DNA of 64,000 nucleotides from positions 21,142,001-21,206,000 of the forward strand of contig OZ281499.1 of assembly GCA_965637545.1 (NCBI GenBank), written 5' to 3'. Positions 32,041 to 61,734 of this stretch are shown one piece after another (positions within the stretch are counted from its first letter, which is position 1; each line of letters opens with the position of its first letter). The notes beneath the pieces were generated by a model. It had not been told where the DNA came from. It saw nothing but the letters and a program-made list of their open reading frames with translations, and did not search any database. Origin of the DNA: Phallusia mammillata (Eukaryota). The translations under genes and the position numbers were made by a program.

Positions 32041-32438
32041 TTTCTATGTTATTTAGGTACAGACCTACACAAAAATCTAAAACCTACTTGTAAAGTATCA
32101 AGTATTAAAAACAATTGTATGTAACAACAAAAATGCAAATAAAAGTTTTGGAAATAATAAACTTAGGTAGTTAAAATACTTCATTTCTGGTAAAGTATGT
32201 TTTCATGAAAATAATAGCAAATAACATCAAATGTTTCAAAACTTGCAGCAACTGAGGTGCAATAATTCCATCCATAAATTCGTACATGTCGCAGTTCAAG
32301 TATTAAGTATGCACGGCAAACACTCTACATAACCAGAATTGGAGGCAAGTTTACCTTAAAAAGCTACCGAGTACCGACGAAAACAACAAACGAAAAGCAG
32401 CATTTCGCGCAACTAGCAAAACCGCAAAGCTGTCAACT

Positions 32439-32885: not shown

Positions 32886-35800
32886 ATGGAAGAAGAAGGT
32901 GCAGCTGGAGCTGATAACATAGTCACGGAATTTGCGACATACGAGGACTTTCTAGATTCACAAATCACGTCACTGGATCTGTACTATTTAGAGGTAATTT
33001 TATTCTGCATATTTTCCTCATATTTTTGCATCAGGTTAAGCTTCGTTGTGTTGACACTGGTATATGCATCTCGAAGTTTGCTTTCTCCATCTAAGCATGC
33101 AGTTTATTTGTCGTTAAGGATTAATAAAAACAAAATTGATAAATGTAAATGATGGAACATGGAACACATATTTTTGAATGAAGCATTCATAGCTCATGAC
33201 TCTAATTCCTATGGATGATATCCCAAAATTTGCAATGACTGCTTTAAAAAGTAATAAATCTAAAATATCAAACCTGTGATTTTAAGCAGCTCAGTTTGTT
33301 TTTTAATTCATTATAAACTGCATAATATCTAAGTTTTCACTGCAGTGTGTTGTCCAAATTTGTACAAAAGTAATATGTGGCACCTTTTTTAGATTGAATT
33401 TACGACTTACTGCAGTAACACAGAAAAGTACTATTACTTGAGCTTGAAATATTTTAAAAAATTCTATTCCTACGTCTTTTTGCAATCCTATGGCATCATG
33501 CTCAGATCACAGAACACGAGCATCATTTAAATAACAGAAAACTTAACCTGATAACCCATGTTTTTTCAGTGTCCTTTCTGTTTTATGAACTCATTTAACA
33601 ATTAGATAAAGTGACAATAAAATTCGACTGGGCTTGACTTTGTTTTATGTTTATGTTTTAAATTCATTTTTTAATAATGTATTGTTTTCGAACAGGATGA
33701 AGAGTTGGCAAGGCAACTTGTTGAACTTGGCTATCGAGGCAGTGGAGAGGTTTTAAAGCGAGAAGAATTTGAAGCAAGAAAACAAGCAGCAGAAGCTTCA
33801 AGACTTTCAAAGAGAAGTCAACAAAAGTAAGACATGCCATAGGAATAACATTGCAAAATATGAATTAGAGTATTTTTTGTTATGAGCAAGATGTGTATAT
33901 ATATATATATATATAAGTCATAAATAACAGTTGTGCTAAAAATCAAACGATATTTCGGTTTCAAACTGGTTATGACCGGTTCCAGTTTTTCTGCCTCCTG
34001 CCAAACCCCCAAACCCCCAAACCGGTTTAAACTGGTTTTCAAAATCAAAAATTAAGATCAAAAAAAAAATTTGACCTGATTTTCGAAAAAACCTTAGCCT
34101 TTTCCGATTTTGGGGGGTCAAAGAATCGAAGAAAAGTCCGGTTTTCTGTGGGAAACTGACATTTTTTATTTCAGTGTTTGGCCTTAACCTATGCTTGTTT
34201 TATTAAGTAGTATATTTTACATTTATTATTTAACTATATATAATGCTATCAGTATCATTTCTAGTTTTTTGGTGAAATTGTTTTAATTAAGTTCTATTGC
34301 CAAAAAGTTAAATATGTCATGCAATATCCTTTAATCCTAATCTTTTTTAAAAAGTATGCTTTTAAACTATAACATGATGACAAATGTCATGATACAAACT
34401 TCCAACATTGTATGCTTTGACAAATATATTAGAGCAACCAACTTGACAACAAGCACAAATATCATACATCACCATTTCTAAACAGTTTGCATGATTTGAC
34501 TGTATTCATATTAAGTTTATTAAATCCTAAAAATACCCACCGCCAGGTGGCAGTGCTGGATCAAAATGCATTTTATTATCCATTGGCCGCTTTTTTATTT
34601 AAAATACGGACATTCAACTTTCCAACAAAAACTACTTCTTGGAATCACAAGAGTGATTAAAATTACAGGTAATATCAAGTTTGGCTTTATATGTAGTGTA
34701 ACCAGCGCCTAAGACCGTATTCTACACAATCAAAGTAGCCCACTTAACTAAAAAATGTTGCTAACTTAGTCGCATTAAAGCTGTAAGCCCACAAGCTGGA
34801 CTGAAGGTGGGTGGCCTACTATGTGTGACGTATGCTGCATTGCGCAGTTGGCCAGTAAAAGCGGCACACTTAACCCAATAGGCCTACAGATGTCGAACAC
34901 CTGTCCGGTTTAGCGATTCCTTTATATCCGCCAAACACCTACATCCTTATCTAAAGCTACCGGCAAATATTATGGCTGATCCGACTCCGGTAGCTCGCTT
35001 TGAAATAATAATCGCAAGGCCGTGAACCTGTGCTCCTTGCACAAAGGCCTGCGGTTGACATAATTGGCTGTTAATCGCCAAAACACCTGATCCCTGCCAT
35101 TGCCCTCTGTTGTTTTATTTTCGTTATTGAGTGGACCAAGCGGTAATTTGAAGCCGGTTCTGTGCATAAGGTGGAATGGATTACACCCAAGGGTTGAGGT
35201 CAGATCCTAAACACGTGTCGTTCTGTGTGCAGTAATTGTGTCTGGGTTGGGGGTAATAAACTGGGCACGTGCCAACTTGACTGACATCAATTTGATTAAT
35301 CACAAGCCAACCGCTCAAATATTTTACAAACGACAGGCCTTGACTGCTGAGCACGCAAACTCTTTCCTTTTTTCCCCAAATTAGCAAATACTCCTATATG
35401 TTAACTCGGCTCAAGTCGCCGAAAACTCAAATTAACCCGAGAAATGTTTGTTACCACCCCACAACAAACAATTTTTGTCATGGAGACCGGAAATAAATCA
35501 ACGTGCATTTGATTTATTTTATTAAACTTACGGTCTATGCTTTCATCCGCCGATGAGATCGAAATAAAATTAAAATGTTGTGTCCATTAGGCACGTTTTA
35601 TATGAAAGGGGTTGTTCAAATATTTCCGCATTATTGTTTTCCAGAAGCTTGTGATTTTCTGTGCCTCGAAGTCTTGAGATCTTATTTGGTAATTTTAATA
35701 TTGAGCATTTCTTCGTGTGTCCACAATCAGTCTGTGTATTGGTTTTACCTTTTCGTTTATAACATGTGAACCAAACTTTAAGATCTAGTTAACCCACGAG

Positions 35801-38800
35801 GACAATTTACCCAAAAAAGAACATTTGTAAAGAACAATTACTCATTGCAAAAACGATTCAAGCACTACCGTACATATTGAGTTTCAGATCTGTGCGTTTG
35901 GTTGATTTAAAACAATATTTCCTAGTTAAGTGCTACGACACCATTCTTGAAAGCAAATCCATTTACGGCACATGTTGTGTTTCCATGGTCTGCGTTTTTC
36001 TTGTTTACATTGAGCCCACACATTGTGCGACCTATTATCACACCTTGAAGACCACCCCTTTATACCCGGTTGCTATCAAAACAAAACCGTGCCAAAACTG
36101 TAGTCGCTTTAGTCGACATAACTAGACACTTTTGTGTAGTTAGTAACACGAGCGCTACTGGACCATCTGCAGCCAGAAAGCTCTCTTTTGTCGGCGATTA
36201 TCAATTGGCGTTTTGATGTGGTTGGTTAACAGACAATCCAGCCTCGGGAAGCCTTGAGTCTCTCGGCCGGTTCAGGAAGGCAATTGTTCCGCACCCGGGG
36301 GCACTCGACCCCGAAGTGATCACCTATTGATGCCCGGCCACCTGCGCAAGTGTTCTGGGGGTGCACGCGTTTGATAAATGATATGATTGTCGGCCTTTTT
36401 ACATTGCGTCTGCCCAGTAAACAGGTTATTAGGCGTTGCTAACTTGATAAATTGTGACCAGGTGCGTTTTGTGGGCTTGGAAAACTCAACGCGCCTTACA
36501 ACGCCACTCGGCATTTAGCGCTCATCTTACAGCCATTGAGCATTTTGTTGTGTAACAGAGGCTATGTTTTGGCAATGGGGCAACGTTTTCTTCGTCTTGC
36601 CCAATTCTGAAACTGTAACCAACAAAACGGGTGGTTTTCGTCTCGCTTTCGACAGTATTTTTTGACTTGGGTAAACAAATCTTGTTTCAGCACCCTTTTA
36701 GGTCATCGTAACGTTACGCCTGCGCAATAATAATAACACCTTTGTTTATATATGGTTGTGTTTGTATACTGACCTAAATACCATAACGGATTAGGTCACC
36801 TAATGACGTTACGCTAAATGCCAACGACCGAATGTGCTTTGAGGAATTTGCATACTAGTTTGCCGAGCTGCTGATTTTGCAAATTGACTTTTAGCTGCAA
36901 ACCCCTTTGAACTCGTGTTATCACAGCGACAACCGCAAGCATTTTTGTGCCAAACAGACCAATTCAGATGCTAGGAACCCAAACTTTCCCTTGAGTAGGT
37001 TGAAGGTGCTGAGAGAGCCGATGACCCAAACCAGCAGAAACAATTCTTTTTTCCCACAGACATTTTCCCAGCACCGCAAAACTGTAAAGTTCAAAACTTG
37101 TCGCTCAGTTTTACATGCCAAGATGCAACCTTAAGCCGCGGACTTTGAAATTACAAAGAAAACTTACGACCCCTTCCGTTGACAAGCCCGCAAAAGTCCA
37201 AACAACCTTTAGTTGTAGAAACTCATCCATGTCATAACAGCTTTCTAACTTCGTGCAAGGAACGTGCGAAGTTTTTCAAGGCGGCAGAATTATGCAAGCG
37301 ATGACCTTAACAGACCACACACGAACGGAGCCTTTGAAATGTATTCCACTGTATAGTTTGTTCGTTGTAAGGGGCCTGAACTTATGCATGACAGATGGCA
37401 GGGCAGAGACATCGCATATGTCATTCTCGGCTGACGGGAACTAGGCCCCGTGCTTTTGTTAAAGAAAATCTGTACAAGACAACCCTTCTAACAAAACGAT
37501 TTTGACGTTGATTTGATTTCAAAATTGTGTTTTGAGATTTGAAATCGCATAACCCGTCTATTGATCTCCTAACTGCATTTTTTTCAGCTTTTGCTTGTGT
37601 CTTTTAAAGCTTGGCTTTGTGGGAGGAAAGAAGACAATAATCCATATATGCGATTATTATGTTCGTTATTTCGTTAGGATTTAAGTTAAGCTGTATTTCA
37701 ATTGGGCAATATTATTTCAACAGGCCCAAATGGCTAACACATTGAGAAAAACACAAAGGAAAAAATATGAGACAAAAAACTCATGACCCTTAAACTGTTC
37801 AGAATCGAGTCCTTAAATTGCGTTTATTGCCTCCATTATATTTATAACTTGCCAATTTAGCTGGTTTATGCCATGAAACTCCGATGTTGCTATAACCGAT
37901 AGAGGGTTGTTCACCTGATGCGACTTACGAACACCTGGAAAGGGTGAATGAATCGTAGAAAGTAGTTAATCGTGTGACATGTAGACGGTAGGAAACCCTT
38001 TACAGTCTACAGTGTTGAATTGCTGGGTCCTGTTACATGTGTGACGAACCACACGTGCCCCTATTGTTTTTGTCCGGTGATTGACGATTACGTAATTATC
38101 CTTTGTTGAAGTTGATTTGTCAATTTAATTACTTGGCCAAGATGTTTTTTGAAAAAAAAAGGAAAATTAACAGTTTTGCAATTAAAATTTAAAGATGGTT
38201 ACGTATTCTATGGCATTATAAAAAGGAATTTTGATTCAGCGATTGACAAAAGCAATACACATGTGAGTGGCGAAATTGTAAAAGCGATTTATTTTTTATT
38301 TTCTTCGTTTTTGAACATTCGTTTTACCGCCCTTGATGCAGTCATTAAACGTCAAAGGCATTGAAAAACCCTGATTCTAAGAAAGTATGGAAATATATAG
38401 TTTGTTACACAAAACTTCTAATTTCAATGCCAAAAGTTTACTCTTTCTCTGTGATGTAATAAATAACATAGTTGCACATTTAAACGTTTTTTCCTTTGCC
38501 TTGTGACGTTGCTATGACGTTGTTTTACCTGAAGTTCTTTCCGTGTTGTTTGATTGACAAGTGAAAGTTGAATTGCTCGATGGGTCCTTATCAGTGACCT
38601 TTGACGAGATAATAACTGACCTTTGTAAAGAAAACATTGCGGTGAAAACAGTCTTGTTCTCTGGATGACATCAACTGATTTTGTTGCCACAGCTGTAAAT
38701 TAATGAGTTTAACATGTTACTATGTCCAGGACAAGACTGGACATTCGTTGTGTTGTGTTGAAATACGCTTATGTTTATCTTAGCGGAAATCCATTTCACA

Positions 38801-41800
38801 AAATGGTTCTTTGGTCAAGCTTTTGTTGTTGCTGTCAAAAGGAAATTTGGGCTTTAGTTCGTGCTTTTTATTTAGTTTCGTTTTTGCTAAACGTTATCAA
38901 ACGTTTGACATATTTTTTTATTTTATGACATACTATTTATTTTTCTGGTATGCAAATTTCATGGGTTAAATTTATTGAACACGCCAGTATATTTGAATAT
39001 GGCTTATCGATATTTTGACAACTCTTTGTCTTTTTTTATCAAATACATAATTTAACGGCCCCATTCTGCGATTTTCATTTTTTTCTGAAATGTTCTTTCC
39101 GCAGTTTTTACGTTTTTAAAATAGGTAAAAAGTCCAACGAGATATTCCACTTTTTATTAGGTTACATAAACTACTTAGATTTTTATTCACAAAAAAATGT
39201 AGGTGTCACGTTTATGTTACCAATATCTCATATTTCATCTGCAAGCATTCTTGTGGTCTCCCGTCACATTTCCAGTTATATATATATACATGACACATTT
39301 ATTCACGGCAGTTGTCAAAATATTGTAACTCATATTCGGGTCGTTACGAACAGGTGTCATGCGGCAGGAACACTTAACCGAAGGCAACTCAGCGCACAAT
39401 CGGTACACGGGTATACGTTATGCGATATAGATATATTATTGCATGGTCGGCGCGCTAATGTAAGACTTACATCAGTCCAGATCCCATTATGATAAGCTAG
39501 TTTCACCTTTCATATATGACAGTGTTTTAAAATGAAAATCCATTGTGGTGTTCTGTGCTGGAAAAGTTTGTCAGTAACCATATGATTGCGATTTATATTC
39601 AATACCCATGGAAAAAAGTTAAAATGTGGAAAATACTTGTCGTGTGTCCGCTAAATTACAAGGTTCAGATTGTGATTATTATGTCTTGAAATCGGATAAT
39701 TCAGACGTGTGTACTGTACAGAGAATTACTCAAAAACAATTTTAGTAGTTGTCTTTTCTTAAATTAATCACAGACACCATGTCAACAATCAACATTTCTT
39801 TTTTGGCTCTATTGGTATTAATGCAAATATCGTACATATTATCGTAATAACTAAGAATGGAAAATATTTTCCCAGTAACGAAATCAGTTATGAATATATT
39901 GGAATATATATATATTTTATCTAGTGGCATCATCAGTTCCTTATTCAAATAGAAACACTCTCAGTTTAGTATCGTAATACAAATCCTATGACTTTCATGG
40001 CGTGGTTAGAATTTTTATATACTTTGTGTTTAAAGTAAAGTAAATGTAAAAGTTAACTTAAGCCTTTCTTACATCATGCGTTCACATGAATGCAAACTAT
40101 TTGTCCAAAATTCACTCTTTCATTTTTCAAAAAAAATTGGTAAAATATTTCCAAACGTTCGTCTTTTGCAATTCCTTTTCTCTCTTACGCAATCTGATCC
40201 CGTTGCAAGTCACAATTTTTTACTGGAACCACCTGCTTGGTTAAGGGTCACTTTACCCCCTAAGAGATGGACCCCAGATAACGTCAACTATGTGGGTAAA
40301 TGTCGTCATGGCCAATCGCGCTGGGTAACGTGTCAGTTGGTGTTGCATAACTGTTGGGGGACGGTAGTTTCTTAGCTTTGCAAAGCTGCAGGTAAATTGA
40401 CACGCATAGTTAGCTTAGTAAATTGACACGCATAGTTAGCTTAATATAAAATAAGACACGTCTCTTGTTTGATAAGTTATTTATACTTTTATACAAGGAA
40501 AAAAGTTTAAATATTCTGGTGCACGTAATGTACTTCAATATTATTATTTTAAAGTGTTGTATTAAATATCTGTTTTTGCAACGAACCTTTTGCGTTGTAT
40601 TTATCAGTATTTTAAATTTTTCCTCATTGAACTGCAGTACTTTTATGTTATGTTCTAAAAAAAATATTTTGGTATGGTCTTGGCGGACATTTTGAAAATG
40701 GGATTATTTTTTAGGAGAGGGGGGGGGAGTAAACTCATTGTGGCTAAAAATGCACCATTGGGTTGACATAAAAAAATTCGTTTAAATAACTTTCATCTTT
40801 GTTAGGGCGTGTCAATTTGTCACGTTAATTCGTTCTATTAATACATTGAAAGCTGCAATGCAAATGGAGAAACGCCACAAAATTTGGGATACCAGCTTTA
40901 AAACCCATCGCCTAAACCAGGTTAAGATGCCACCTTATATTTCACCTGCGTGCAAGCTGTACAAACTCTACGCACAATAGCATTCAAACTTCGCATTTTA
41001 ACCTCACCTATAGATCCTAAAAACTTTAAATCATCCATCAACACTTGGTTAACGAGGCCGGGCGCTTGGAGCATTCTTAGCACGGTTCAAGCCTAAATCG
41101 CAACCTGCAACCGTATTGCACCGGTGCCCATCTGTTCATATGACACCACCTAAGACCTGGGTCACCGCACCAAGCAGGTCTAAGTGACAAGCGCATTAAC
41201 ACATCTGCTTCACTATAACAGTTGCGAAAGGCGTTACGGGAGCACCCCTGTGCTGTTTTTACGTCCATTGGCCGTGATGTTTTGACGACAGGATAATTAG
41301 ATAAATGCATTTTTGGGGTTTGTGCTTGTGCCAATGTGCTCGGGGTGATAAAATTCCTTCGAGTTGATTTACAAAACACGGTCAAGTGTTGGAATTCGGG
41401 TGAACGGAACGTGTTTAGGTTTTTTCTCGCTGTTTTTCTTTTGGCGAAGAATGATCGGTGCAACTGTCTGCGTGGCAAGATATATGAAGTCGAGCACTAG
41501 TCTACATAACCGTCTCGCCGATAACGAGCTGTTTCACGTTTTAGACAGCAGACCTATATGTCTACATCTCTTGTACACCAATCTTAATGCGCGAGCGATG
41601 CAATAATTGCCACCTAACTATGCCCATAACCATTGCCTAAAATTGTGCTTCGAAAAATGACAGTTATGTTGCTAGTTGAAATGTTCAAACGTAATTTTTT
41701 AATCTTGCCGTCGAGGCTGTTTTTACCAAATATTCTGTTTTTGTTCGAAGCTTTTTTAGATTTAGTTTAAATTTACATCCAACAAAACGAAAATCATGAG

Positions 41801-44800
41801 TCACAAACACGTTGCATTACTCGTGAAATATTTTTTCTCGCGTAGTTTGCAAAGTTATGTTGATGTGTATGAGGCTTTCAGAAATGCCATAGAACGCTTG
41901 TCGTATATTTAAGGGCGTTCAAGTTCGTTCATATTAGTCCCGCTCATTCGACGGTTGCCTCTCAAACAGGTGTGGTAAGGGTTTGCACACCTGCTCTGGT
42001 GCGTGCTTCTTTAATTAACTTCCAAACAATTTTGACACGCCGTGTTTAATTTTACCCAACAAGGCCAGACACAAATAAACAACTTTGAACCCAACATCAA
42101 TGCGGGACTTTCGACTTGTTTTTTATCTTGGATTGGCAAAAAAGCATGACCCACTGGTGTTTGGCCCATGTGTACACTTGAAAATGCATTTCTAGTTGTG
42201 GAATTTGCGAAAAATTAGGAACGAGGTTACAAACAAGGGCCGATTTTACAGGAATTCGGATCAAAGTGACGACCTAATATTCACTTGCAAAGAAAACTAA
42301 CCACATCAAAGTAACTACATCTATCGTCGGGATATCATCTTACGGAAGCTGGTAGCAATAAAATTAGTCATGGCCACTTGCAGGAAATACCACAATTCCG
42401 CAAATCAACGCGCAGTGCCAAAAACCAAGCTCGTCCTGCTAAGCCCACGAATCGAATTTCCAACGTAAATTCGCGACACCTGCGTTTTGTGACATCACAA
42501 TTGATGTGCGAACGATTCGAATTTTCGCCGCGACCGCGCATTGACAGTCTAAACCGATCGGCTTGTTACAGCGTGTTGCCTGGCTTGGTAAGCGCACTCC
42601 GTAATTGCAGGTTACGTGTGCATCCAACAGGTGTTACGCCGCACCCTGTGTGGCATTTCGGGTGCCAGATATCTTGCTGTCAATCATGATTTCTTGAAGC
42701 TTGTCCACTTCGACCACGTGATGAATGACGTGGGAAAGTGGACAGTCGATTTTTCTTGACCACTCGGCCACTGACAGTTGTTGGTATTCTTGTTTTCCTT
42801 TAAAGTTGACGCGTAAAGACGAATCGGTTCTCGCACCTGGCTATAACTTGTTCACGTGAAAGTTAACACTTGATGTACACGTCAGCGGGAAAAAACGTAG
42901 GAAATGTTCCAGGTGTTACTGGTTGTTTTCTTGTTATTTTAAAGCAAAAAGACAAATAACCAGGCAATTCTTTTTTCGTGCCTTTTTGGCATTTTTCTTC
43001 TAAACATAAATTTTGCAAAATATATGTTCCTTTTTTGTGATAGATTAGATTGTTTTTACTTATGTCTGAGAAAAATCTGAGAAAAAGTTGTACACGCCAT
43101 ATTTATATCAAGTCATAAGGACCTAAACTAACAATACATTGCCAAAATTTCGCCTAAGCAGTTTTATCTAAAAACACAATCCATGAACAGGTCGCTTCAC
43201 GGTTTCTGCAACCCTCACTTGACCTCACGTGCAAGCAAAAACATTTTAAATCCAATTCCGAAGAATTTCACTGCTTAAAACTGACAGCCGGGTACGCAAT
43301 ATGATACTGACGCAGATAGTTAGAATTCGGGGAATGCCTCATAAATTTAATTTTAGGAAATAAACTTGTATTTTCCAGCTTGTAAAGTTATTAAGGTGTC
43401 AGTTTACACGCGTATGTACCAGACCACCCACTTGCAGACCAGTTCGGTTGTTTGCCAAATGTGTGAACTTTACATGATGTTGAAATTCAACTGCGAGTTT
43501 GTTTGTCACCAATGTCAACCGCAAGCCCAAGGTTTACATGTCTCCTGTCAAATTTGAAATTTCAAGTTTTGGATCAATGAAAAAACCGTGCTTTTTACGG
43601 TTCGGTAAAAGGTAATAAACCTACAAAGGTGAAATTGTTCGTATGAATGTTCATCAGTCCAAACTGTTGCATAACGCAAACACAATTGTTGAAGGTCAGA
43701 GTTTAACAGGCACGTTTTTTGATTTTGTTTTGTTTATTCTGTAAAGCAATTTTCTGGAAAATTATGATATATCATACGTAGTTCGTATTGTAAAAACTCC
43801 AAGTGTGCCATAAAATGTTTCTATCTTTGCCGATTCTGTCGTTAAAATTTGTGCAAACTTGCAAAATTGAGAAACAATTTTGAGTTCGTTACATTGTTAA
43901 AATAACCTAAATCATGTTTTTTTTTTCGGTGCCCGTTTTAGGAACACCTCAATATTAATGTGTAATATAACATCTAATAGTATGGAGTGAAGCCCAGGTA
44001 TTTGAAAAGTCCAAACCAATTATATACCTGCTGCGTTTTTAATGGCTAAGTCTCGAATCCCATTCTTTGTTTTTCGCTGTACCGAAGAATCGTTTAGACG
44101 TGGGCCCACGCAGCAAAAACCGTCGGTTGGTATCGAAATGTGATTGTGCTACAACTGTTACATTCGTGTCTTTTTTGCTTTTAACCGCTTCATACACGTT
44201 AATTAGAGTGACAAAAACAAAACCCGACTGAGCGACCAAGCACAAACCGACAGCTAATTTTATCGAATTTGTGTTCTCATCTGTAACATGCTGCACCTGC
44301 CGACTCACTCGAGCAATTTGTTTACCACTCGCTCATGTTGTTTTGACAGAACTCTCGTGAGCTCAGGAAAGGACTTAAGAAGTGCCTTCTTACGGGCTCT
44401 TGCTCAGCGTGAGGAGGGAAACAGAAGTGGCAAAATGACGGTAAGATTTGTGGTTAATTCCATGCTGCATGCACGGTGTCTTGCACGCACCAACCATGTT
44501 GGAGGCTGCGAACAATCCCAGTAAATTAATCTACAAAAACGATTTGCAACTCTTTTATTGAGTTGTTTGTGAGGTCATAATAAATACTTCTTTGTTCAAA
44601 TTTCTACATGTCTTAGGTTTGGGGAACTGTGATTTTGAAGGAAAGGTAGCAAATAAATTTCTGATTTTCATATCCCAAGACCCAATTCATTGTAAAAAAG
44701 TGACACTTTAAATAGCAAATAACCCCATTTCTATTCTGATGTATCAATTTTGAAAGGATTTGTAAAACATCAAACAATATCCTAATAGTCTCTATCATTC

Positions 44801-48380: not shown

Positions 48381-48546
48381 TTGCTACAATAGAGTCTTCC
48401 TCTATCTTGTTCGTCTTGCGCTGTATCTTGTGTCGTGAATGTAATCGTCTTCTCTACATGTTACAAATAAAAGTACATTTATGATTACGACGGTGCACAT
48501 GCGATTTTGTATCAATTGTCAAATCTTGCAATAAATGGTACAGTAT

Positions 48547-48595
48547 CTGCAGGTATTAAGGCCCAACAAAAAATATTCCTTGCAACTAAAAAACT
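48547..48595 (+). repeat. Short dispersed-repeat fragment with a second copy at about 63497-63547
   Basis: CTGCAGGTATTAAGGCCC...CAACTAAAAAACT versus CTGCAGGTATCAAGGCCT...CAACTAAACAAACT. Confidence 0.4.
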
Positions 48596-51500
48596 GTCAT
48601 ACAGAACGAATGTTATTTCGTCGCTATACGAAAATTATAAAGTTTAAACCCTATGCAGCATCAACTTTTGGACAATAGTTGTTTAAACAGCTTGGTAAAT
48701 TTTAACCGCTTAAAATAAAAGGCTTTCAAACTGTGGCAAGTTTACGAAACTGTTGCTATATTTTCACTAAAGCTCTCAGGAAAATAAACGAGACACTGCC
48801 CTCGACACACCCCCAAGTTTAAACCAATTACGTGATGCGAAAGTGAACTCACGTAACAACATGAGGCTATCACAGCGCGTCTATAATTAGCCGACCGATC
48901 CCGTTTTAATCGCTTTATTCACTTCAATGAGCATTCACAACAAATCCAAGATATCGTTTGTTATGAAGCCACTAATTTTTCATCAGTGCCTTTTTAAAAG
49001 GGCGTGGAAAACTCGAAATTAATTTTGGTTTTTAAGCGCTGCTAAAGTTGCCATAATTATGACGTTTCGTCAGCACGATTTGCCAGCGTTCAATGCATTG
49101 CGTGCTACTGGTTAAGTAACCAACACATTACCCACCCATTCGGCTACAAAAGATCAATTTGTTTTTAAATAAGCGCCGAATGATCGATTTCAAAAGTTTC
49201 CAAGACTTTAGCGTTTCGTCGCGCAAGACTTGAAAAGGATCCGACATTCAAAAATATCCAGAATGATATTTTCGGTATTTCCGTTGCGACCCAAATTTCA
49301 AAGTGCCAACAATGGTGTTGACAGGTGCCATGTTGTGTCACTGTGACATTGCTGACATGTTCCTAACCTGTCACGCCCATCGGCCGCTGCCACGCCTGCC
49401 GTTAACATTCCACAACATCAGTGATCTATTAAATATGTCTCCCGTTTAAGCTTTAAGTACGCGATTATAGGATGGTAAAACACAATAGAAATAGAAAACA
49501 CAAAACAACGCCTTCCAAAGACAACTCCAACATTTCCAATAATATTTAAAAGTACAAGATGTGTCTGGTTGAATAAGTTCCATTACTAGTTACGTAATGC
49601 TAAAGGTAAATTTGGTCAAAGCAAAGGTGGCGAAATTTGTAACACATTTAGACTAAAGTTTCTTAATTCCGAGGGCCAACATGCCGCGAAATAATATTTT
49701 TGTTAGTCTACGACCACAGCACGAAACAAAATCATTTTTAATACCATTTTTCTTTATTTTGATTCAGGACTCGTCAGTAGTTGCTAAGCCCCAAATAGCC
49801 CTAAACCTGAAAAGGTCGACGAAAAATACAATTCGCAACAAGTCCTGCTGCGGCCTGTTGATCCGTTTTCGTATAATAACGGGTACAAGGGTTTGGTAGA
49901 GGTGGGCTATTTGTTGAACTATCGACAAGTTTGTGAAATATTTGGGACTTCCATTCGTTGCACGCCCCATCAACAGCCACGTGATGAATCTGCCCCCAAA
50001 AGTCCAACCCCACAACCCCCAACAATGTTGTGACATCTGATCGTGCAAAACAAACACATCGGCGCGAGCCACGGATTATCGAACACGCTTATCCTTGTAC
50101 GTAATTGTGCAACCCTAAAACTCCCGTCTACCCCCTGGTAACCCATGCACCGCTTGGCACACGCTTGTCAATTTTTACTGACATTTGCAAGTCCTAATCC
50201 GTGCACATTTTGGGGCCAATTGCCGGTTGTGGCCCCAAGGACCCCTGCTATGTTTTGGGTTTCAAAATTTAGGCAAATTCAGCATGTTTGTGACGTCAAT
50301 GCCTTCTCGTTTGTCTCGCGTTGAGCAACAGAAAGTTTGAGAGTTTAAAATTTGTGTTTACGACTAAGATACCTGAACTGTTTGTCCACAGTTTGTATGG
50401 GATATTGATGACACGTTTCGTAATATTGATGTCTCTGGGTCATTGCATTTTTAAAAAGGAAAGGCTTAAAACAAATGTTTTCGTACCTAAAAATTTCATC
50501 AAATGCAATGCACACTTTAATAGCCTAATTGCAGACTTAGCGAATTTAACCAGATTAGCCAACATTATTTGGGAAACAGAGATTTTGCAATTTCTTCGCC
50601 AGACGATACAGATCGGGCAAAACACTTTCCCATGAAACAGACAAAGTGAGCGAAACTTGCTTTTTCGCTTGAAAGGAAAACAATTACACGTCGCTTTTCA
50701 AATCATACAACTGTGATGCAACTCGGAACAACGTACAATGCAAACGAACTGGAGGGAATCAAGCTAATGACATCACAACCGGACCCCCTTTCCAACTGGC
50801 AGAACATCCGGTGTGAGTGGGGGTAGAAAACAGGGGTTAGTGGGGCGTGCAGAAATGAAAGTGCTTCTATGTCCTGCCCAGCTGGGTCTGGGTGAGTTGG
50901 GGCGTTTAGGGACTTCCGCGGTTGCTATACGTCATGGGGGCCTTGGGGATTTCCCAAGAAAAACAAGCACACTGACTTATGGTGCGGCAAACTTGTGGCT
51001 GATGGCATGTAAATAGTACAAGGTATTTTGGGAGACCTGATTCCTACCTTATGGCACGTAGACACTTGGTTTTGTTCAAAAGAATGTGAGCAAACTTGTT
51101 TTAATGTGAAAACATATTGCGAAGAAATATTTGCCAAATACCGGTAACCAAACACCGTCCGATCATCGGATCGTCGTGTAACCAACCCTGCGCGAATCCA
51201 TTGTCAGGTTGCACCTGTTTGCGAGATAAATTCGTGAGAATATTAATAAAGGCCAATTCGAATTTTGCCGGAGACTGTTTTCCGTTTGTCAATCTCGACG
51301 TTATGAGATATACAGAGCGGCCATCGCCGGGTATTGGCCAAAGAACCCGATTCCGGGCCAACTTGGACCACCCAGGCCCGACCCCCCGCGAATGTAGCAT
51401 CACCTGGTCATGACGTCACGACGTATTGTGTTTGTTTACGTCAGAGAGCGCGCGCGTTTAATCAAATTGCCAGCGACGGGCAATCAGCGCGAAGTGGCCC

Positions 51501-54500
51501 ACCTATGCCGAAGTTTAAACCAACATCAGGTTTTGGCGAGATGTTATAGGGAGATAAGCGACTCGATGAATCTTCATGGGATTTGGGTGCGGAATAGGCG
51601 AAATGCATTTGTTAAGCCCTGTTTCCATGTTGCGTTTTGAATAAGTTTCCACATATTCTTTTCCATTTTTCTTCTTCTATTCTATTTTCTTTACCTAGGG
51701 CTTATCGTTTACCAAGTGCAAACTAAACAAAGCAGAAGTTGACATGAAACACCTCTATGACGCCACAATTGTAAGATAGGGAGCAAGTGGGACGGCAGTG
51801 GGAGGGCAGTGTCATTAAAGCAATCTTGACCGGATGCCTTAAGTTTTTACAGCAATTCCTTATTTGTTAAACGAAATATTATCTGGGATTTAAAGTCTTT
51901 CCTGTTCTGACCACTACATAGGGGTCTCTATGGGTGAAAACGGGGGCTCGAGGAACCCCTACTGTGATGACCCACGGAGATCCGGTGACCCTGACCAACT
52001 AAAACAACAAGTTAATCTTTGAGATTTTGTTTCACTCACTTCACTTACTTTACCGGGTTTTCGTTTTGTTAGCTGCTCCCCTGCCAAAGAACGAAACACT
52101 AAAGATATTTTGTGTTAAAGTTTCTTCTGCGATCTGCTTTAAGTTGGGTTTGGTTTAGCGCTGCAATTATCGCATGGTTTTGCCAGCTGTTGTAGCTTGG
52201 AATTTCAAAGGTCGGAGCTAAGATTCGTGGTCTGCCTTTTCACGTTTCTTGGTAAGGATTTAAATATTTTTGAAACTTCTATTTAACAACAAAAATGCTG
52301 AACTACACAGACCGAAGCAGCAATTAAATGTTTTTGCTGTAAATTTTGATTGTAACGTCAGAGATCAGGGTCAAAAACAAAGTTGCATTGCAAATGATAA
52401 TCATATAATTTCCTCATGAACCGAAATAAATGTTAAAATTTCTTAGGCATGAAAAACATTTGTTTATCTCCAAAATATTATTAGGTCATCTCAAAAATAG
52501 CGACACATGGCAACGTCATTCATCATTCCCTAAATCTTTCATGCCCTCACGTTGTAAATGTAGGATGACACATAGTTATTATATACGACCAAACATGTAA
52601 TCTTTCAAACTCAGATTTCACATATTGAAAACCGGGTTCAAAATTCCAGATTCGAAAATCGTCATCCAATCAGCACGAATCGAATCGATCACGTGTTTAG
52701 AAAAGGAAATTCTGGGAAAAATCGCAAAACTTGTCAGAAAAATGCGGGAACAAAACATTTTTTATTGCCCTCCGTCGACAGATTGGGGAGCGCGGTGGGT
52801 TTGCGGTGACGATAGACCAATAACGTGCCTGCACGCGTCATCATTCGTCAGCACACGTGACTTAATCGGGATTAAGAGATCAAAAGCTTCATCCTGTTGT
52901 GCAATGAACCGTGACAAAGCGCGCACACGGAGCTTGTGAGATCATAACAATGGGATTTGGAAGACAATGTACGTTTCATCACGTGGTTGGAGTGCTTCCG
53001 GGTGGAGATAAAAAATGACGTTGATCTTAAGATCTGCTGCTATGATTGATTGTACAACAAAAATAAGGAGAACTGTGTCTACGAAGGTCGTTTTTTGCAT
53101 GAAAATCGTGACTGACTGTGTAGATGCTTTATGTGAAATAGCTTATCACCCTGATTTTCTAAAAAAAAACTTGGAATATCTTTTTCATCGGTAGTATTAA
53201 ATACCGCATGTTGGAAGTGGCAAATAGACTTGAAAATGCTTTTGCAAAAAATATAATATTGCGGACTTTTGAAAACGCTGACGGTTAAATTCGGGTTGGG
53301 TGAGGGTTTGTAATTAAAACAACAACACTAGAATAAGGTCTAATTTACCCTTGCCGGGGCTTGTGTTCGAACATTCCACACACCGTGTGTTATTTAGTAC
53401 CACCATTTTTTACTAACAGCTTTTGCTGCGTTTAAAACTGTTGCTGTCAGGCATAATATGAACCTGACATAGCATTTTTCATGTTGTCGTGCCCTTTCAG
53501 TGACAAGAAGATGACCATGGGTTGTTTTATGCCTGATTACTTCAATAAACATTGTACAAAAGATTTCTATCAATCCATGGAATGCAGAGATGTTAATAAA
53601 CCGGACTGAAGAGGGTGAACTCCGTTCAATACATTGGGACGTGCTTTATAGCTCTCTGAACTATGGATACAGCTGTTGTTAAGGTCCAGGAAACGGCGGG
53701 CAGACGTTTTCAGCCATTATCGTTCCATCATAGCCTGGGCAGTAAAATTATTACGGCATAGGCCCGTTGAAGCTGAAATCGAATTACGTGAGCAGCTGAA
53801 CACACAGAAATAAGTTGTGATGACTCTAGTGGATTAAACATTGTGACAGACCAACTGGGAATTCGTTTCCAACCGCACGTTACTGTATTTACTCCCAATA
53901 ACTGCTTTCCACATAAAGCTGGCATTCTTCAGTTTCTCCCAATTCCAATTTACAAAATAACTCTTTACGGCGTCCTTTAAACTTCCTCCACAGCTGTTAA
54001 GAGTGAATGTGAGGAAATGAGTTTGCATATAAAACGGAGGTAAATAGCTAGCAGGGCAACAAACAACCATAGTCGGAACAGGAAAGCAAAACACACACGA
54101 CAATCATACCAACAAACCAAACTGCATACACACACAATCGTAAATCGGTACTATCCCAACCGTACACCAAACCAATATGTTGTTATTGAATACAACTACA
54201 ATAACAATAAAAGTATATTTTTGGGACAATCGAAAAAGAAAAAAGGCGCTAAAAGATGTTACTTGCCGTTTTCATGTAGTATTAAGTTTTAACAACCCCA
54301 TTACATAATCTTTTTCGCGCTGGTTTTGACAAATACCGGCTCAAACCTTCCGACATTGTGCCCTTGACATAAGACACCCCATACCATTCATTCACATGCA
54401 TTAGGGCGGCTAATACTAGCGGTTTCAGGTGGCTTGCTGTGTGATGCAGGGATGCCTTTAATGGCACCCACTTGTTATGTGCATAAATAGGAGCATTTGT

Positions 54501-57500
54501 GGTAATTTCGTGCTGTCCAGGTGTGCATGTGTCACCTTCTGACGTTTTTTCACCCCTCTACCAATTTGGCGATGAAGGCCTGAAATTAGCTCCACTGACA
54601 TTTCGAAACGGACGACTTTCAGTTTACGATGCACGGTGCCTTTTTGCGCAGTCTTGGTTTGGTAAAATAACATTCATCCGTTGAGGATACACGCAAGACA
54701 AGATGCTATTTCGGGTTTGTAAAAGGTGATGTAATGAAAACACCAGCGCAGTAGTTTCAATACAATGAAACGCACCCCAGAAGAGCATCTGAATGTGTTT
54801 TTTTTAGAATCATGTAAACTATTTCATAAAAGGGTATGATTATCTTAGACTTATAGGTGGACAAAAATCGTAAATGTCTGTTTTGGTATATATAAGGCCA
54901 TTATTATCGGTGACGCATTTTTTGAATTTGGTTGAACAAACGTAAAGTCAGATATTATGTTCCATTTTATGGTTAAAAAACTAATTTTACATTTGATTGT
55001 AAAAATGTTGGGCAATCGCAAATATATACATAAAAATATACAACAACATTGCACAATACCGGGGAATTATTGCGCAATCGGCATTTTGCAAAGCTTTACT
55101 TTGGACAGGGGCGACAGCAGCAATGTAGCGCCGCAAACTCGGCACAGTTAATGACTTCAATACAACATATCTTAGCCATATGCTGGTGCAGCGTATGAAA
55201 TCGTACGGCGCGTTTAGCAAGCTGGTCTTTCGGGCTCACGTATTTGCCCAGCTGCTTAAATCGTCGAAAACAAATAAAACATCAGGTGCGTCAAACAATC
55301 TTTCACCAACATATGGAGGCTTCAATACTGAGCTGGGTATTAGGGGCGGTCAGTTGCAGGACCGGAAAGAGTTTATGTGGTTGTGGAATCGCATTATGAG
55401 ACTTTATCTTCAATTTTGCCCAAAGTGGACACCTCCGTCTAACTTCGATTGTTGCTGGTTCCCCTGGTAACAGTTGTGAAGAAGGTTTTGGGTTACTAAC
55501 AGTCAACACAATATTGTTGTTTAAATATAATATAATTTGTATAAAATTACATCAAAGGTAACACTAAAAAGGAAAACAAAGGGAGCACTAAATCTACACA
55601 TATCATCACTCTTGTATTCAAATAGAAAATATATAAGAATTACGTCAAAGGTGTTTTTAACAGCCCGATTAGGAGTCGATTAAATTACTTTTTTCGGGGC
55701 AATAAAACTCAAAAACAAAATGGAACTTCTTTCTTTTTCAATTTGGTATCAACCGCTAAGCCACAGATGTCACAAGAAAAATCTTTTGAAGGTATGACTG
55801 ACACGAAAGCGTATGCTTTGGAAATACAATTTTCCCTTTCGTCAGAAAACCTTAACCACAAACTACCAGTAATCGACCACAAATGTATTGCACAAAGGGG
55901 CATTGACATTTCACACAGAAGCCAAAGTTGCACTGCGACCAAGATTGTGGTGATGGATTTTCGCTTTTCACATCTGACTGGAACAGGACAAAGGGCCTTT
56001 TGACGAAACTCGGTCCTTGCGATTCTGAATGAACAAGTGCATTAAGCAGTGCGACTTCATTACACAGCTCTGTGCACATTCCTATGCCTGCCGAATAGGA
56101 CCCCATCGGTATATGGGCAAACAAACACTGTGCGTTCGCACAACGGCAAATGATTAATGAACGAACCACATAATGGCATAAATCAGAGTTGTGATGTCTT
56201 TACTGAGATAGCCAACCTGAAGTCCGGGTCGCTTGTCCAGTTAAATAATTTTAGTGCAATATTTTACTGCAATGAAAATATAGCATCAGTTTTCTTGCCA
56301 TAGATTGAGAAATATGCTCTTTCACTTGGTATTTGTGTTGACAAAGTGGCAGGCAGTTTCGCTTTCATAAAGGTTTTAATGGCTCTTCTATATTTAAGTT
56401 GGCATTGCAATGAAATTAAATGGGGTTTGTCAGGTTAGTACAGAAATAAAGTCGTCAGCTTTTTAACATACCAACAGTACGGCGAGGAAGGTATATATTT
56501 AGTTGTTGATTGCGTTTACCAGCTGAATACAAGGTTACGTCACATTTTTATCACATGACTATTTAGCGAACCGTTGTGAGTCAAAGAGATAAAAAGAAAG
56601 TAGCTGTGAGATATGAGTTCCCGATTTTGAACAAGTGCATTTTGTTTGCATAAAAAGGTTTCATGATTTAATTCGGAATTAGGTGCAAAATGTAAAGAAA
56701 AAAACACATTTATTTCCATTTTTTAATCTTTGTATTTCTACATTTATATTATTATCAATTTACAATTTACATGAATATATTTAAAACATGATTACCGCAA
56801 AGCAAGGCAAACCCAAAACGCTTTTTCAATTTGTTCTGTGCCTCCCTACAAATTAAATTCGGTTTCCCAAAGTTGTAAAAAATCGACAACTTTAAAGATG
56901 TGTATGGCGGGTGAAGCTGAACAAAAGTTTATTTCGATTTTTGAATTAAGCCATAAAATTTTCACTTAAAATCTGTTAACACTTCAAGTCCTGATGTATC
57001 CTCTCCCATATATCCATTTTACCCAGTCTGTCGTTAAAATGTGATAGAGTGAGAAAAAATTGTCTATTACTTGCTCAGAAAGGTACTCGTGTTTAAAAAT
57101 TGTCCACCAAATGTCCAAGTGTGTATATCTACAGCTGTTACGACAAAAAGTTTATTAGGTATGGCGCGAAGACATAATTCCACACTCCTAGATGGAAACC
57201 ACTATAAATTAATTGCTTTTAGTCTTGGGGGTGATCCAAATATTGTCCCCGGTCAAAAAAGATAGTCTAACCACGACTAGAACACGTAAGGAATGTCGGC
57301 AACAGCTGGAGCAATAGAAATCGTAGGTAGAAAGTAAAAAAAAAACTTCAAAGGGGGAGCACACGGTTGGTGATTTATTTGTCATGTGTTGACATTTCTG
57401 TCGGTGGAACGGAGATGAAAGAAGACATGAGACGTGAGAACGGAAAGAAATATGAACAACTGGTTATAATGCGGCTCATATGATATTAAATGATAATGCC

Positions 57501-60500
57501 AGGCATGCTACGATTAGTTTTGACTCCGACGAACAGGTGTGCAACACTAAGCTGTGTTTGTCTTAAGAGTTATATTGGATACGGCACACTAAAAAGGCCA
57601 GTGGCTCTTCAGACGCGCAACGAGAAATATGATTTGGCAACTTTTTGCCGTTTCTCATAGATGTCACATACCTTATGATCGAGACCAAAGTCTGTGGGAA
57701 ACAACCATAAGATTTGTGACGTACGATTCATTACGTAATAGATACGGAGGTTTTACTGGGTTCGGATTATATTAGGTCATGTTTATACGATTTTCTAAAC
57801 CAAAAAATTTTTGGGTAATAATAGAAATTTTGACGCAATTTGGTTCCAACTCTAATAACGCATACAAGCCTATTAGGATTAGTTTTATGTATAATGTCAA
57901 CCATAGTGCTGATAGAAGTGGGAGTTTATTATAAACCTTGGTGGTTTACACAAAATATCAAGTCTGTAGGAAACTGTAGTTGAAAGTTATTACATAAAAC
58001 GTGAATGTCGTCTATTACGACATATGTTTTCGTGGTAAGATGTCTCTCTGTGCATTGAAAGTAGAATAAATAAATTTGGAGTTATTTGCCGTACATTGAT
58101 TTCACATAAGGGTTAGCTTAAATATAAGACTTTTTACCAAATATAAGACTTTTTTACCATGATTTGTTGGCTAGTAAAAGACAATCATATTAAGGTGTTG
58201 ATGCACATTTAAGTCTGCAACAAAACTTTCGAGAGCGAAATTGGAAAAAAGTGGAACAAATTTTGCTTTAAAATTTGAATGAAAGTCATTTCCACAAAAC
58301 CGAAATGTCACTTTCATTTTCCCAACAGTCCTCTGCGCTACTCGTGTAAGTCTAATTGGCGTGCGTATAACCATAAAGCAGGTGTAGCTTCACGAGATAA
58401 TTTGTTGAACAAATACCCTTGAACGGTTGCAAACCTTTTAACGCACGCTTGCACAGAGAGACGCAATCCAATGGTTAACTTAAACTTGCCGGAGATGTTG
58501 CCATTTCCATAGCGTGGGCTAAAAGCCCAGAATTGGGGGGGTTGTGTACACAAACTGTTGGGCTTGTGGTTTTGCCCGCGTAAGCTTCCGGTTAAAGCTC
58601 TGCAAGACTTAAACAAACACTCGCTTGCTTGTGCACACCTGAGAATTGCAGCCTGGACAGGTGTTCGATGCTAATCAACGATCTTGTTTGCTAGGAAACC
58701 AATTAGGCAGCCACTCGTTGGCCAATTAGAGCTCCCCTTATCAGTTTGACGGCGCATCAAAGATTGGACTATCACCGCGTGGCCCAAGAGGCGCTGGGGT
58801 CACCTTCCCAGGTGATCCGGGCTGTTCTTAACCTCAACTTTCTTATCGCATTGCTTTATTCAGGAAACATTATCTGTTCTGTACAAATATTCACTATTTT
58901 TATGTAACTTGAGCAGAACTGAATCCATATTAATATGCTGCCATGATGATTTGTTTAGCTCTATGGTCTGATTTCGGCGATTCTTTGTGAACCAAACAAT
59001 TTTGTTTCGATTCAAGTTAGATAATTTGCACAACTCACTTATTTCCCCAAATGCCATTCCTCCGATCTTTGAAAAACGTCACTACAGCTGTCCTTTCTCA
59101 AAACCTTCGATTTTCGACAACATTTTTGAAGTGTGTCCGCCTTGTTGAAGATAAGAAGGGCGATAATATCGAGATAAGTTGACGCTTATCGCGGCTGCCA
59201 AACTGTGGCCAAGTGGTTCGAAATTCCCCAAAACGCCTCATGAACCTACAAGGCACAAGTACTTCGATTAATTTGTGACAGCGCCATCAAGTTAGGGTGC
59301 GATTGGCGACAGTTGGGTAAACAGCTGATGGCTAAATGATTGTCCTCTCTCAAGCGAGTTGGAAGGGTGACGTGATTGATTTACTTGTGGTTGGCGCAGT
59401 GCCTTTGTCCGCCAAATCCGATTTAGGTCATTACAGGGTTCGTGAGCGTCGCCATTTTGCTTCTGTGCTGCCAACATTGGGTGGGGACCGATAATTGGTG
59501 GCCACGACGCGTCGATTTTAGGAATATAACGGTCAAGCTACATGAGATCGTATGGTGGTAAAGGTTAATTGTCACTCGATTGACCGTTTTAAATAAACTA
59601 ACCTACGTCAATCTGTAACGATATTTTCACAGACTGATAGTGTGACATCACATATGACATCATGGTAACATATAAGTTCCACGTGACGACGAAAAAAGGC
59701 TAATTGATTATTAGGGGTAACAAATTCGCAGGTGCTATTGTTTTTTTTTTCGTAAAAATACACTTTGCTGAAAGTAAGTTAGAGAGAGTATTTGCATCAA
59801 CAAATGGCAGCTATCAAGTTTTATTTGTCTTGTTTTCGAAACGTCCAAACGCGCGCGCCCACCTGTTTGACTTTACACGCGCCATCGCGATTTTGTGGCA
59901 ACATAAAAACCCGACTCGCACAACGAAACCCGCCATTCGTCGTCGACCAGTGGCAGGTGTCGTGTGTCTTACACCGCTGCAACAAAGCAAGATTTCGTGT
60001 ACAAATTTTGTAGTTGACGAAATGGTAAATCAGTCCTGAAGTTTAAGTCGCAATTTAGATGATTTTTATAAGTTGTTTTAGGTAGCTAGGTGGAGTGACA
60101 AATAGTTTAACAGTCTGCATGTTCAAATGTTTTGGACACGTTTTTTACGTGCATTTGTTATTTGGTATTGCAGCTCAAAGGGTGTATTTGAATAACGTTT
60201 GCTTTATATCTGATATTAATGCATGTAGCAACGTTTGAATAACATATCACAAAATTTTGTGGCATTTTCCAAAACACATTTTAACGATTTTACATGGATA
60301 GAACTGCAAGATAACTTGCCAAAGCATGAATTTCCGAAATTGCCAAAAAAAACATTTGTCCAAACAAGTGATTTTTTGCACAGTTTTCAATGCGCTTAAT
60401 TTTTTACCTTTAAAACTCATTAATTTTTGGCACTCATGTTGGTTGAAAGGTAATTTTAGCGCTTCTTGCAATCTTATAAGCTTGTGGTATCCAACCCTAT

Positions 60501-61098
60501 AGCGATTCTGTGGATCCACGTTTACCGCAAGTCAAAATAGCAGAGCACACCTGCAGAAGAGAACCGGCCTTGAATTAAAGGTGTCAGATTTTCGCGGTTT
60601 TAATCTAGAATGAATTAAAGTCGCCATCGCGGTTTGAGAAACTGTGGTTAAAGGAAGGAGACAGTTTTAAATTAAAGCACTTAACCTATTATGCTGTGGT
60701 GTAAAAAACGCACTCTTTTTTAAAACGCTTTAATGTTGTGGCTTATTTGTTTGGTTTCTATGAAGGAAAGCGCTTTTCGGGCCTCGGGTATTTGCAATGT
60801 GAGACTTTATCGCGCAGCTGGGATCTCGCATATCGTTTAGCTCTGAAAACCGAGCGGTTTTAAGATCTCAACCCCAGATAGCCTTGTTAAAAGCTAGTTG
60901 TTGGTTTGACTTTTGACCTAATCCCTTCGCGGCCCGGCGGGCCAGCTGGCAAAACCCGTGCGAAACGCCTGAAAACTCAGTGGTAATGGAAACTTGCCTG
61001 TGAGTTGAACATCTTGGTCCAATCTCTCACGCTTCTCAGTAGCCTTGTTGTTTTGCGCTCCAGTCAAAAGTCACCTGGCCAACGTCAACGTTTGTGAC

Positions 61099-61119
61099 CT
61101 TTCCTTTCTTTTGTTACAG
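61099..61119 (+). other. Strong 3' splice acceptor 32 nt upstream of the BMP ATG (5'UTR intron or trans-splice acceptor)
   Basis: CTTTCCTTTCTTTTGTTACAG|G; no partner donor identified nearby. Confidence 0.6.
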
Positions 61120-61151
61120 GTTTTTTTCCGGCGTAAACATATCTGAACAAA

Positions 61152-61734
61152 ATGTCACACAAGCGCTTCACTTTTATCCACATCGCTGTGTTCTGTTTAC
61201 TCTTGGCGCTTTGCTTGTCGCAAGCCTCAGCGAAACGTTCACGAAAAGGCGGGAAAGGACGGCGCGGAAACCGGCCATCAGATAGCGAAAATAACCGAAG
61301 TGAGTTTGCCGCAAGTCGAAACAACTCGAGCGCAGTCGCTTCGCCGGAGCTCGACGTCGCAGTTTCCGCGGAGGAAGAGGAAGTTTCACGCGGAAGTAGT
61401 AGAACAGCTGGACGCTCACGATCGCAGAAAACAAGGCCACAAAAACGCGGGAAAAAGCGCAAGGGCCGAAAAGGCAAACGCGGCCGCAAAAGGCCACAGA
61501 AAAAGGTGATGCGGGACGTTATGCGTAAACTATTTGGATTTGATCACATGATTGAAGGAAAAGGAAGGTTGAATTCGGTAATTCCGATTGATCCCGCGGT
61601 AGAGGATTCGGGTCCTATTCAACCTCCGGAGTTTATGTTGGAACTCTACCAGTCCTACAAGGAGGACTCCAGTATGATGCACTTGAAGTTTGGTTCCCAT
61701 GGAAACACAGTGAGGAGTTTCTTCTCAGTGGCAG
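61152..61734 (+). CDS. First coding exon (signal peptide and start of prodomain) of a BMP-type TGF-beta superfamily precursor, BMP3/GDF10-like or ADMP-like; gene continues beyond the window
   Basis: Signal peptide MSHKRFTFIHIAVFCLLLALCLSQASA. Prodomain motifs MRKLFGF, QPPEFMLELYQSY and HGNTVRSFF match BMP-family prodomain signatures (L..FG, PP.YML.LY, GNTVRSF). Phase-1 donor GCAG|GTGAGA at 61735. No further exon recognised before 64000. The mature domain is not in the window, so the subfamily is unresolved. Confidence 0.88.

Follow-up and report, generated by a model that had tools for sequence, protein, structure and literature searches.

The question raised by this locus is why a cilia gene, CFAP299, and a bone morphogenetic protein (BMP) gene lie side by side on the same strand in the ascidian Phallusia mammillata, and whether the oversized second intron of CFAP299 has anything to do with their staying together. 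The window, i.e., the whole stretch of DNA that was analysed, comprises 64,000 nucleotides of contig OZ281499.1 (GenBank assembly GCA_965637545.1, forward strand, positions 21,142,001 to 21,206,000) and corresponds to G000:C6:21142001-21206000 in the chromosome-level genome of 240 Mb that was searched. We report that the BMP gene is, as judged from its sequence and those of its relatives, the sole orthologue in tunicates of vertebrate BMP3 and GDF10 (here called BMP3). Moreover, we offer a tentative explanation for its position, namely that the DNA controlling BMP3 might be interleaved with CFAP299, such that the pair has been kept by selection as a small genomic regulatory block.

CFAP299 (plus strand, 32886-48380) has six coding exons and 233 codons, delimited exon by exon with the Pfam profile DUF4464, that of the CFAP299 family, and by splice sites read from the sequence, and the Ciona product has the same length (233 amino acids). 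Its introns measure, in order, 702, 10,523, 2,683, 412 and 473 bp. For the BMP3 exons an extra 30 kb beyond the window was read, and positions there are given as extended coordinates. The features of the two genes are as follows:

32886..32993, plus strand: CFAP299 coding exon 1 (Pfam DUF4464; donor GAG/GTAATT)
33696..33826, plus strand: CFAP299 exon 2 (DUF4464 profile positions 26-70; 98% identity with the Ciona exon; splice sites)
33827..44349, plus strand: CFAP299 intron 2, 10,523 bp (splice-site boundaries)
44350..44440, plus strand: CFAP299 exon 3 (Pfam; splice sites)
44441..47123, plus strand: CFAP299 intron 3, 2,683 bp (splice-site boundaries)
47124..47266, plus strand: CFAP299 exon 4 (DUF4464 profile; splice sites)
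47679..47808, plus strand: CFAP299 exon 5 (Pfam; splice sites; protein 100% identical to Ciona)
48282..48380, plus strand: CFAP299 exon 6, including the stop codon (Pfam; splice sites)
61152..61734, plus strand: BMP3 exon 1, encoding the signal peptide, a basic low-complexity stretch and the start of the prodomain (matches residues 1-194 of the public protein P0001, see below)
61735..64000, plus strand: the part of BMP3 intron 1 that lies in the window; the whole intron is 4,695 bp (exon reading)
Extended 66430-66719, 66858-67292, 68011-68430 and 70170-70355, plus strand: BMP3 exons 2-5, beyond the window (exon reading)

The sizes given for CFAP299 introns 2 (10,523 bp) and 3 (2.7 kb) in the initial annotation, which was made from the letters of the window, proved exact, with the boundaries of intron 2 one base to the left of those it had placed. 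The BMP precursor that it saw downstream on the same strand is a TGF-beta precursor starting at 61152, the first exon of which ends at the same coordinate, 61734. Since BMP3 intron 1 is 4,695 bp, the CFAP299 introns are not the sole long introns at the locus.

The mature domain of BMP3 is split over the last two exons, 4-6 kb past the window (G000:C6:21210011-21210430 and 21212170-21212355), and on these exons PF00019, the TGF-beta mature domain, was matched and the seven-cysteine knot pattern was read; exon 1 alone gave no TGF-beta match in Pfam. When exon 4 was used as query against 1.84 billion representative proteins, it retrieved with 99% identity a 636-amino-acid public protein, P0001, which is named 'BMP3 bone morphogenetic protein 3 [Phallusia mammillata]', carries PF00019 (3e-31) together with the propeptide PF00688, and differs from our exon model by 3 substitutions and one single-residue indel. 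P0001 was used as the Phallusia sequence in the full-length comparisons. The next-best matches to exon 4 were Ciona Q4H3U5, an uncharacterised Styela clava protein, amphioxus 'BMP3-like/GDF10-like' proteins and hagfish GDF10.

It is the match of the prodomain, the full-length tree and a shared intron in the mature domain that settle the identity as BMP3/GDF10. Specifically, a search with the prodomain gave Ciona Q4H3U5 at E 1e-66 and the Styela LOC120347787 protein at E 1e-39, followed by amphioxus BMP3, and in a full-length tree (31 proteins, 467 columns) Phallusia, Ciona and Styela form a tunicate clade (100/100) within BMP3/GDF10 (100/99), whose sister clade is ADMP. In Phallusia the mature domain is interrupted by an intron 5-6 codons ahead of the NHA motif, as it is in the BMP3 of Ciona, Styela, amphioxus, pipefish, oyster and hemichordate, while the mature domains of Phallusia ADMP and BMP2/4 are each encoded in a single open frame, unlike the split BMP3 domain. 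The orthology proposed by the initial annotation is thus borne out by the public name, the full-length tree, the shared intron and the presence of a separate ADMP gene elsewhere in the genome.

Were the gene instead of the ADMP or BMP2/4 type, the comparison with human 4q21 would be false; we regard this as highly improbable and as already largely refuted. Some data point that way, all of them from the mature domain taken by itself: in the mature-domain-only tree the Phallusia protein takes a weakly supported position (83/33) at the base of BMP3/GDF10, an approximately unbiased (AU) test on this domain does not reject grouping with ADMP (p 0.24) or with BMP2/4 (p 0.135), and searches of solved structures by exon are ambiguous, the N-terminal half of the mature domain being closest to BMP3 and the C-terminal half to BMP2. 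Against it stand the full-length tree and the BMP3-type intron, the orthology, by prodomain, to genes of Ciona and Styela that group with BMP3/GDF10 in their mature domains, and the fact that vertebrate BMP3 has the same upstream neighbour, CFAP299. In addition, the Phallusia genome has its own ADMP (C7:2.70 Mb, L005), which groups with named ADMP proteins at 98/97, and its own BMP2/4 (C2:21.87 Mb), along with BMP5-8-like, Nodal-like and other family members. On C2 we also observed two tandem same-strand TGF-beta genes, 15 kb apart (G000:C2:21849851-21865330; L002, L003), one BMP2/4-like and the other grouping with Ciona Q4H2P7.

How widely does the pair occur? BMP3 comes directly after CFAP299 on the same strand in Phallusia (12.8 kb between the genes), in Ciona intestinalis (a 233-amino-acid DUF4464 gene; gap 4.35 kb), in a third ascidian represented by a Logan contig of SRR10746996 (gap ~7 kb; with a BMP3 exon 1 of the long tunicate type) and in the pipefish Syngnathus scovelli (gap 2.4 kb), where PRKG2 comes next on the opposite strand. 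A Bmp3-Cfap299-Fgf5-Prdm8b-Antxr2 block has been reported in human, zebrafish and turtle (PMC9928969), and this report is our source for the human gene order; the sequences that we compared included none from human.

In amphioxus CFAP299 lies ~7 Mb from BMP3 on the same chromosome, between a NUDIX gene and TMEM175 (two assemblies), and in three assemblies the 10-17 kb upstream of BMP3 contained no CFAP299 exon. The BMP3 flanks of Styela, two amphioxus species, oyster and a hemichordate were likewise free of CFAP299 exons within 10 kb. In both Styela and the hemichordate Glandiceps, CFAP299 and BMP3 were matched on contigs of equal length and hence presumably lie on one chromosome, more than 10 kb apart. 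The extra 166 N-terminal residues of a long amphioxus GDF10 model were considered as a possible piece of CFAP299 and were found not to be CFAP299. Two ENA animal contigs, L028 and L029, were rejected as carriers of the pair: CFAP299 is present and no BMP3 follows within 9-10 kb downstream. The flanks of CFAP299 on these contigs (L028:4573-5763 and L029:15604-20235) contain reverse-transcriptase, RNase H-like and helicase-like open reading frames (ORFs), i.e., transposon debris, which limits what can be concluded about its neighbours there.

Because the two amphioxus genes are ~7 Mb apart, adjacency can be stated for tunicates and vertebrates, not for the chordate ancestor. The suggestion in the initial annotation that the pair has been preserved since that ancestor is therefore not supported as worded, two amphioxus assemblies placing CFAP299 among other genes; what survives of it is the pair itself, which recurs in Ciona, the third ascidian, a teleost and the vertebrates reported in the literature. 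Of the relatives in which it had suggested looking for the pair, Ciona and the third ascidian have it, amphioxus does not, and Styela and the hemichordate lack it within 10 kb. Since Ciona and pipefish have other genes downstream of BMP3, only CFAP299 and BMP3 have been kept together, and there are no FGF genes on the Phallusia chromosome that carries the pair.

The second intron of CFAP299 can be compared directly across these animals. Amphioxus CFAP299 has two coding exons in a gene body of ~1 kb, and its lone intron is at the position of Phallusia intron 2, after residue 80. The length of the intron at this position and the location of BMP3 are:

Amphioxus: 287-515 bp; BMP3 not adjacent, ~7 Mb away
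ENA animal contigs L029 and L028: 335 bp and 834 bp; no BMP3 within 9-10 kb downstream
Ciona: 3.5 kb; BMP3 adjacent
Third ascidian: 5.3 kb; BMP3 adjacent
Phallusia: 10.5 kb; BMP3 adjacent

In three of the three ascidians with adjacency, intron 2 is the longest visible CFAP299 intron. Vertebrate CFAP299 has very large introns. Approximately 97% of Phallusia intron 2 is single-copy: ~330 bp are repeat and the other 9.95 kb match only themselves in the genome. No Pfam domains were found in the ORFs of the intron. Its repeats are a single diverged unit (~70% identity; ~33950-34152) of a ~196-bp satellite that forms tandem arrays on C1, C2, C4, C5, C7 and C8, and a short dispersed repeat of ~110-125 bp (~39836-39961) with many copies at 82-86% identity. 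A long, unique, non-coding intron is what the bystander model expects, and would fit that model without proving it.

The region between the two genes contains the following features:

48381..61119, no strand: CFAP299-BMP3 intergenic region, 12.7 kb (no Pfam domain in ORFs; no Rfam family)
55240..55297, plus strand: 59-bp block alignable with the Ciona CFAP299-BMP3 intergenic region (78% identity, E 4.6e-6, 46.8 bits)
55230..55462, running ~170 nt further left to ~55060, minus strand: 3' exon of a minus-strand transcript (one RNA contig, run X5)
59038..59259, minus strand: 5' exon of the same transcript (same RNA contig, run X5)
61118..61151, plus strand: BMP3 trans-splice acceptor (AG at 61118-61119) and 32-nt 5' untranslated region (RNA contigs of three runs begin at 61118-61120)

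No Rfam families were found between 32 and 64 kb of the window, and no hidden exon shared with Ciona or the third ascidian emerged when six-frame pieces of intronic and intergenic DNA were searched. The Phallusia and Ciona loci were aligned by a sensitive search with exons masked. The 59-bp block has its partner at L022:7965-8023 in Ciona, and both copies lie between CFAP299 and BMP3 in equal orientation; its score compares with 42.5 bits for the best control among 40 locally shuffled and 16 unrelated sequences. It is present in one copy in the Phallusia genome and includes a Fox-type site, TATTTGC (TGTTTGC in Ciona), and the E-boxes CAGCTG and CAGGTG; since the alignment has a one-base indel, the block is unlikely to be a coding exon. 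A 17-bp match in Styela was weak, did not extend and was discarded. We consider that the block is probably a real conserved element. In Ciona, Bmp3 is switched on early in the zygotic programme of vegetal cells and depends on Foxa.a and Foxd at the 32-cell stage (PMC8189585), which makes the Fox-type site suggestive. The block is overlapped by an unannotated minus-strand transcript in which 55462 is joined to 59038 across a 3,575-bp intron (CT..AC on the plus strand, GT..AG on the minus strand) and which has no convincing ORF.

The BMP3 mRNA is trans-spliced. In one BMP3 RNA contig the AG is preceded by ...ATTCTATTTGAATA, completing the 16-nt ascidian spliced leader (sequence from PMC1488885), and the leader on the BMP3 mRNA, ATTCTATTTGAATAAG (16 nt), is identical to that of Ciona. 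A TACGGG tail ahead of the leader is retained in one BMP3 contig and was read as a template-switch primer. As the mRNA carries a spliced leader, its 5' end does not mark the true promoter, which lies at some point upstream of 61119. A tunicate operon was considered and rejected: the BMP3 mRNA is trans-spliced, but the 12.7-kb intergenic gap, within which there is an antisense spliced transcript, excludes a CFAP299-BMP3 operon.

With regard to neighbouring genes, CFAP96 (Pfam PF15239, the homologue of C4orf47) occupies 28374-32048 of the window on the minus strand, head-to-head with CFAP299, the first coding exons being less than 1 kb apart, and a bidirectional promoter common to the two is likely. 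The third ascidian (contig L032) has this divergent pair as well, and in amphioxus it is the NUDIX gene, not CFAP96, that is head-to-head with CFAP299. Downstream of BMP3 follows a gene with saposin-type cysteine motifs that looks prosaposin-like (L020, extended 76347-83414, plus strand). CFAP299 itself is near-invariant: an echinoderm-like fragment of 173 amino acids is 84-94% identical across sea urchins, hemichordates, amphioxus, ascidians, annelids, molluscs and cnidarians, and nearly all of the homologues that it matched have 233-234 residues; the identity of an exon is therefore no guide to the species from which a contig comes.

What, then, has kept CFAP299 and BMP3 together? The reading that we tentatively favour is that DNA controlling BMP3 would reside both between the genes and within CFAP299 intron 2, that CFAP299 would be the bystander of a small genomic regulatory block, and that a break between the two genes would sever BMP3 from its control elements and hence be selected against. 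The enhancer part of it we infer from the fact that order and strand have been conserved although the genomes are rearranged, from the pattern of intron lengths and from the unique intron. Tunicate genomes have lost most of their ancestral gene order, and a pair with vertebrate-like order and strand is therefore a good candidate for constraint. The long-term adjacency of a developmental regulator and an unrelated gene is found in three ascidians and a teleost and not in amphioxus. Conserved non-coding elements across the introns of the bystander, which also characterise regulatory blocks, were not found: among Phallusia, Ciona and the third ascidian no intronic CFAP299 sequence could be aligned above controls. 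Ascidian non-coding DNA is usually too diverged for alignment at such distances, and the absence of intronic conserved elements is for this reason a weak test. Nevertheless, with no intronic sequence and only one 59-bp intergenic block aligning between ascidians, the case for a regulatory block is circumstantial. Several other observations weigh against it as well: the sole aligned block is intergenic, exceeds the best control by only 4 bits and could not be recovered from the third ascidian; intron 2 shows no enrichment of Fox-type motifs (z 0.13); in Styela the 10 kb upstream of BMP3 contain no CFAP299 exon; few lineages underlie the association of intron length with adjacency, with only 9-10 kb downstream searched in L028 and L029; and among thousands of ancestral neighbour pairs some persist by chance.

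This last point leads to the main rival, neutral survival, in which the adjacency arose once (in the tunicate-vertebrate ancestor, or earlier with loss in amphioxus) and has merely remained unbroken, intron 2 having grown by drift and holding nothing that BMP3 needs. We find it somewhat doubtful. The lack of alignable conservation and of motif enrichment in the intron agrees with it, and amphioxus shows that the pair is not obligatory; moreover, the flanking genes differ among Phallusia, Ciona and pipefish and the chromosome is devoid of FGF genes, which means that the wider block has decayed. Against it, three ascidians have retained both order and strand in spite of heavy rearrangement of ascidian genomes; it is the same intron that is the longest visible one in all three, and in Phallusia it is made of unique DNA, not repeats. 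Furthermore, the partner of CFAP299 is a developmental signal, the kind of gene that is typical of regulatory blocks (PMC3514665).

It could also be that the long intron has a role for CFAP299 itself or for an unannotated transcript (through an alternative promoter, an enhancer of the cilia gene or a non-coding RNA, for example) and that the linkage to BMP3 is a separate matter. The head-to-head arrangement with CFAP96 in Phallusia and the third ascidian suggests that CFAP299 has its own local regulatory set-up, and unannotated spliced transcription is present at the locus. Yet the amphioxus gene manages with an intron of 0.3-0.5 kb and a gene body of 1 kb, the protein is nearly invariant across animals and the intron holds no conserved exon, and we judge this explanation to be quite improbable. 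A historical variant of the regulatory-block reading is that CFAP299 joined BMP3 in the tunicate-vertebrate stem and later came to house its control elements, the intron expanding from 0.3-0.5 kb, as in amphioxus, to 3.5-10.5 kb in the compact genomes of ascidians; such a takeover would be consistent with the distribution of the pair and of the intron lengths, and we consider it unlikely.

Parts of this picture are already known: the vertebrate block is published, Ciona Bmp3 has been studied and the Phallusia gene is publicly named BMP3. In the literature that we searched, which lay outside the supplementary pair lists of PMC3514665, no description was found of the tunicate CFAP299-BMP3 pair, its absence from amphioxus or the pattern of intron lengths. 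The Phallusia locus resembles the vertebrate Bmp3-Cfap299-Fgf5-Prdm8-Antxr2 block (human 4q21) in that CFAP299 is directly upstream of BMP3 on the same strand; it differs in that only these two genes are kept, with no FGF on the chromosome, CFAP96 upstream and the saposin-like gene downstream, and in scale, the vertebrate block extending over hundreds of kb and the Phallusia locus over 37 kb. With genomic regulatory blocks and ancient microsyntenic pairs (Irimia et al. 2012, PMC3514665) it has in common a developmental regulator long kept beside an unrelated bystander with long introns. Such blocks have arrays of conserved non-coding elements inside the bystander, whereas in Phallusia there is one intergenic block only and the pair is absent in amphioxus. 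In Ciona 197 conserved pairs of a developmental gene and a bystander have been found (PMC3514665), and CFAP299-BMP3 is, from its arrangement in these genomes, a candidate for this class. Relative to Ciona Bmp3 (Q4H3U5), to which it is orthologous by prodomain (E 1e-66), tree and upstream neighbour, the Phallusia gene has a more diverged mature domain (end branch 1.14; 'CAGTCTLANSK' replaces the usual 'C.FP' loop), and the introns and the intergenic gap of the Phallusia locus are ~3x longer.

If intron 2 is without control elements for BMP3, the pair is one more surviving set of neighbours. If such elements do reside in it, the loci of Phallusia (37 kb) and Ciona (~15 kb) would offer a tractable system for studying how a bystander becomes locked to a developmental gene, and they might indicate where the control elements of BMP3 are located in the far larger vertebrate CFAP299. 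Finally, should CFAP299 have been taken over in the tunicate-vertebrate stem, the locus would record the birth of a regulatory block that can be dated and that, in ascidians, would be small enough for dissection by electroporation.

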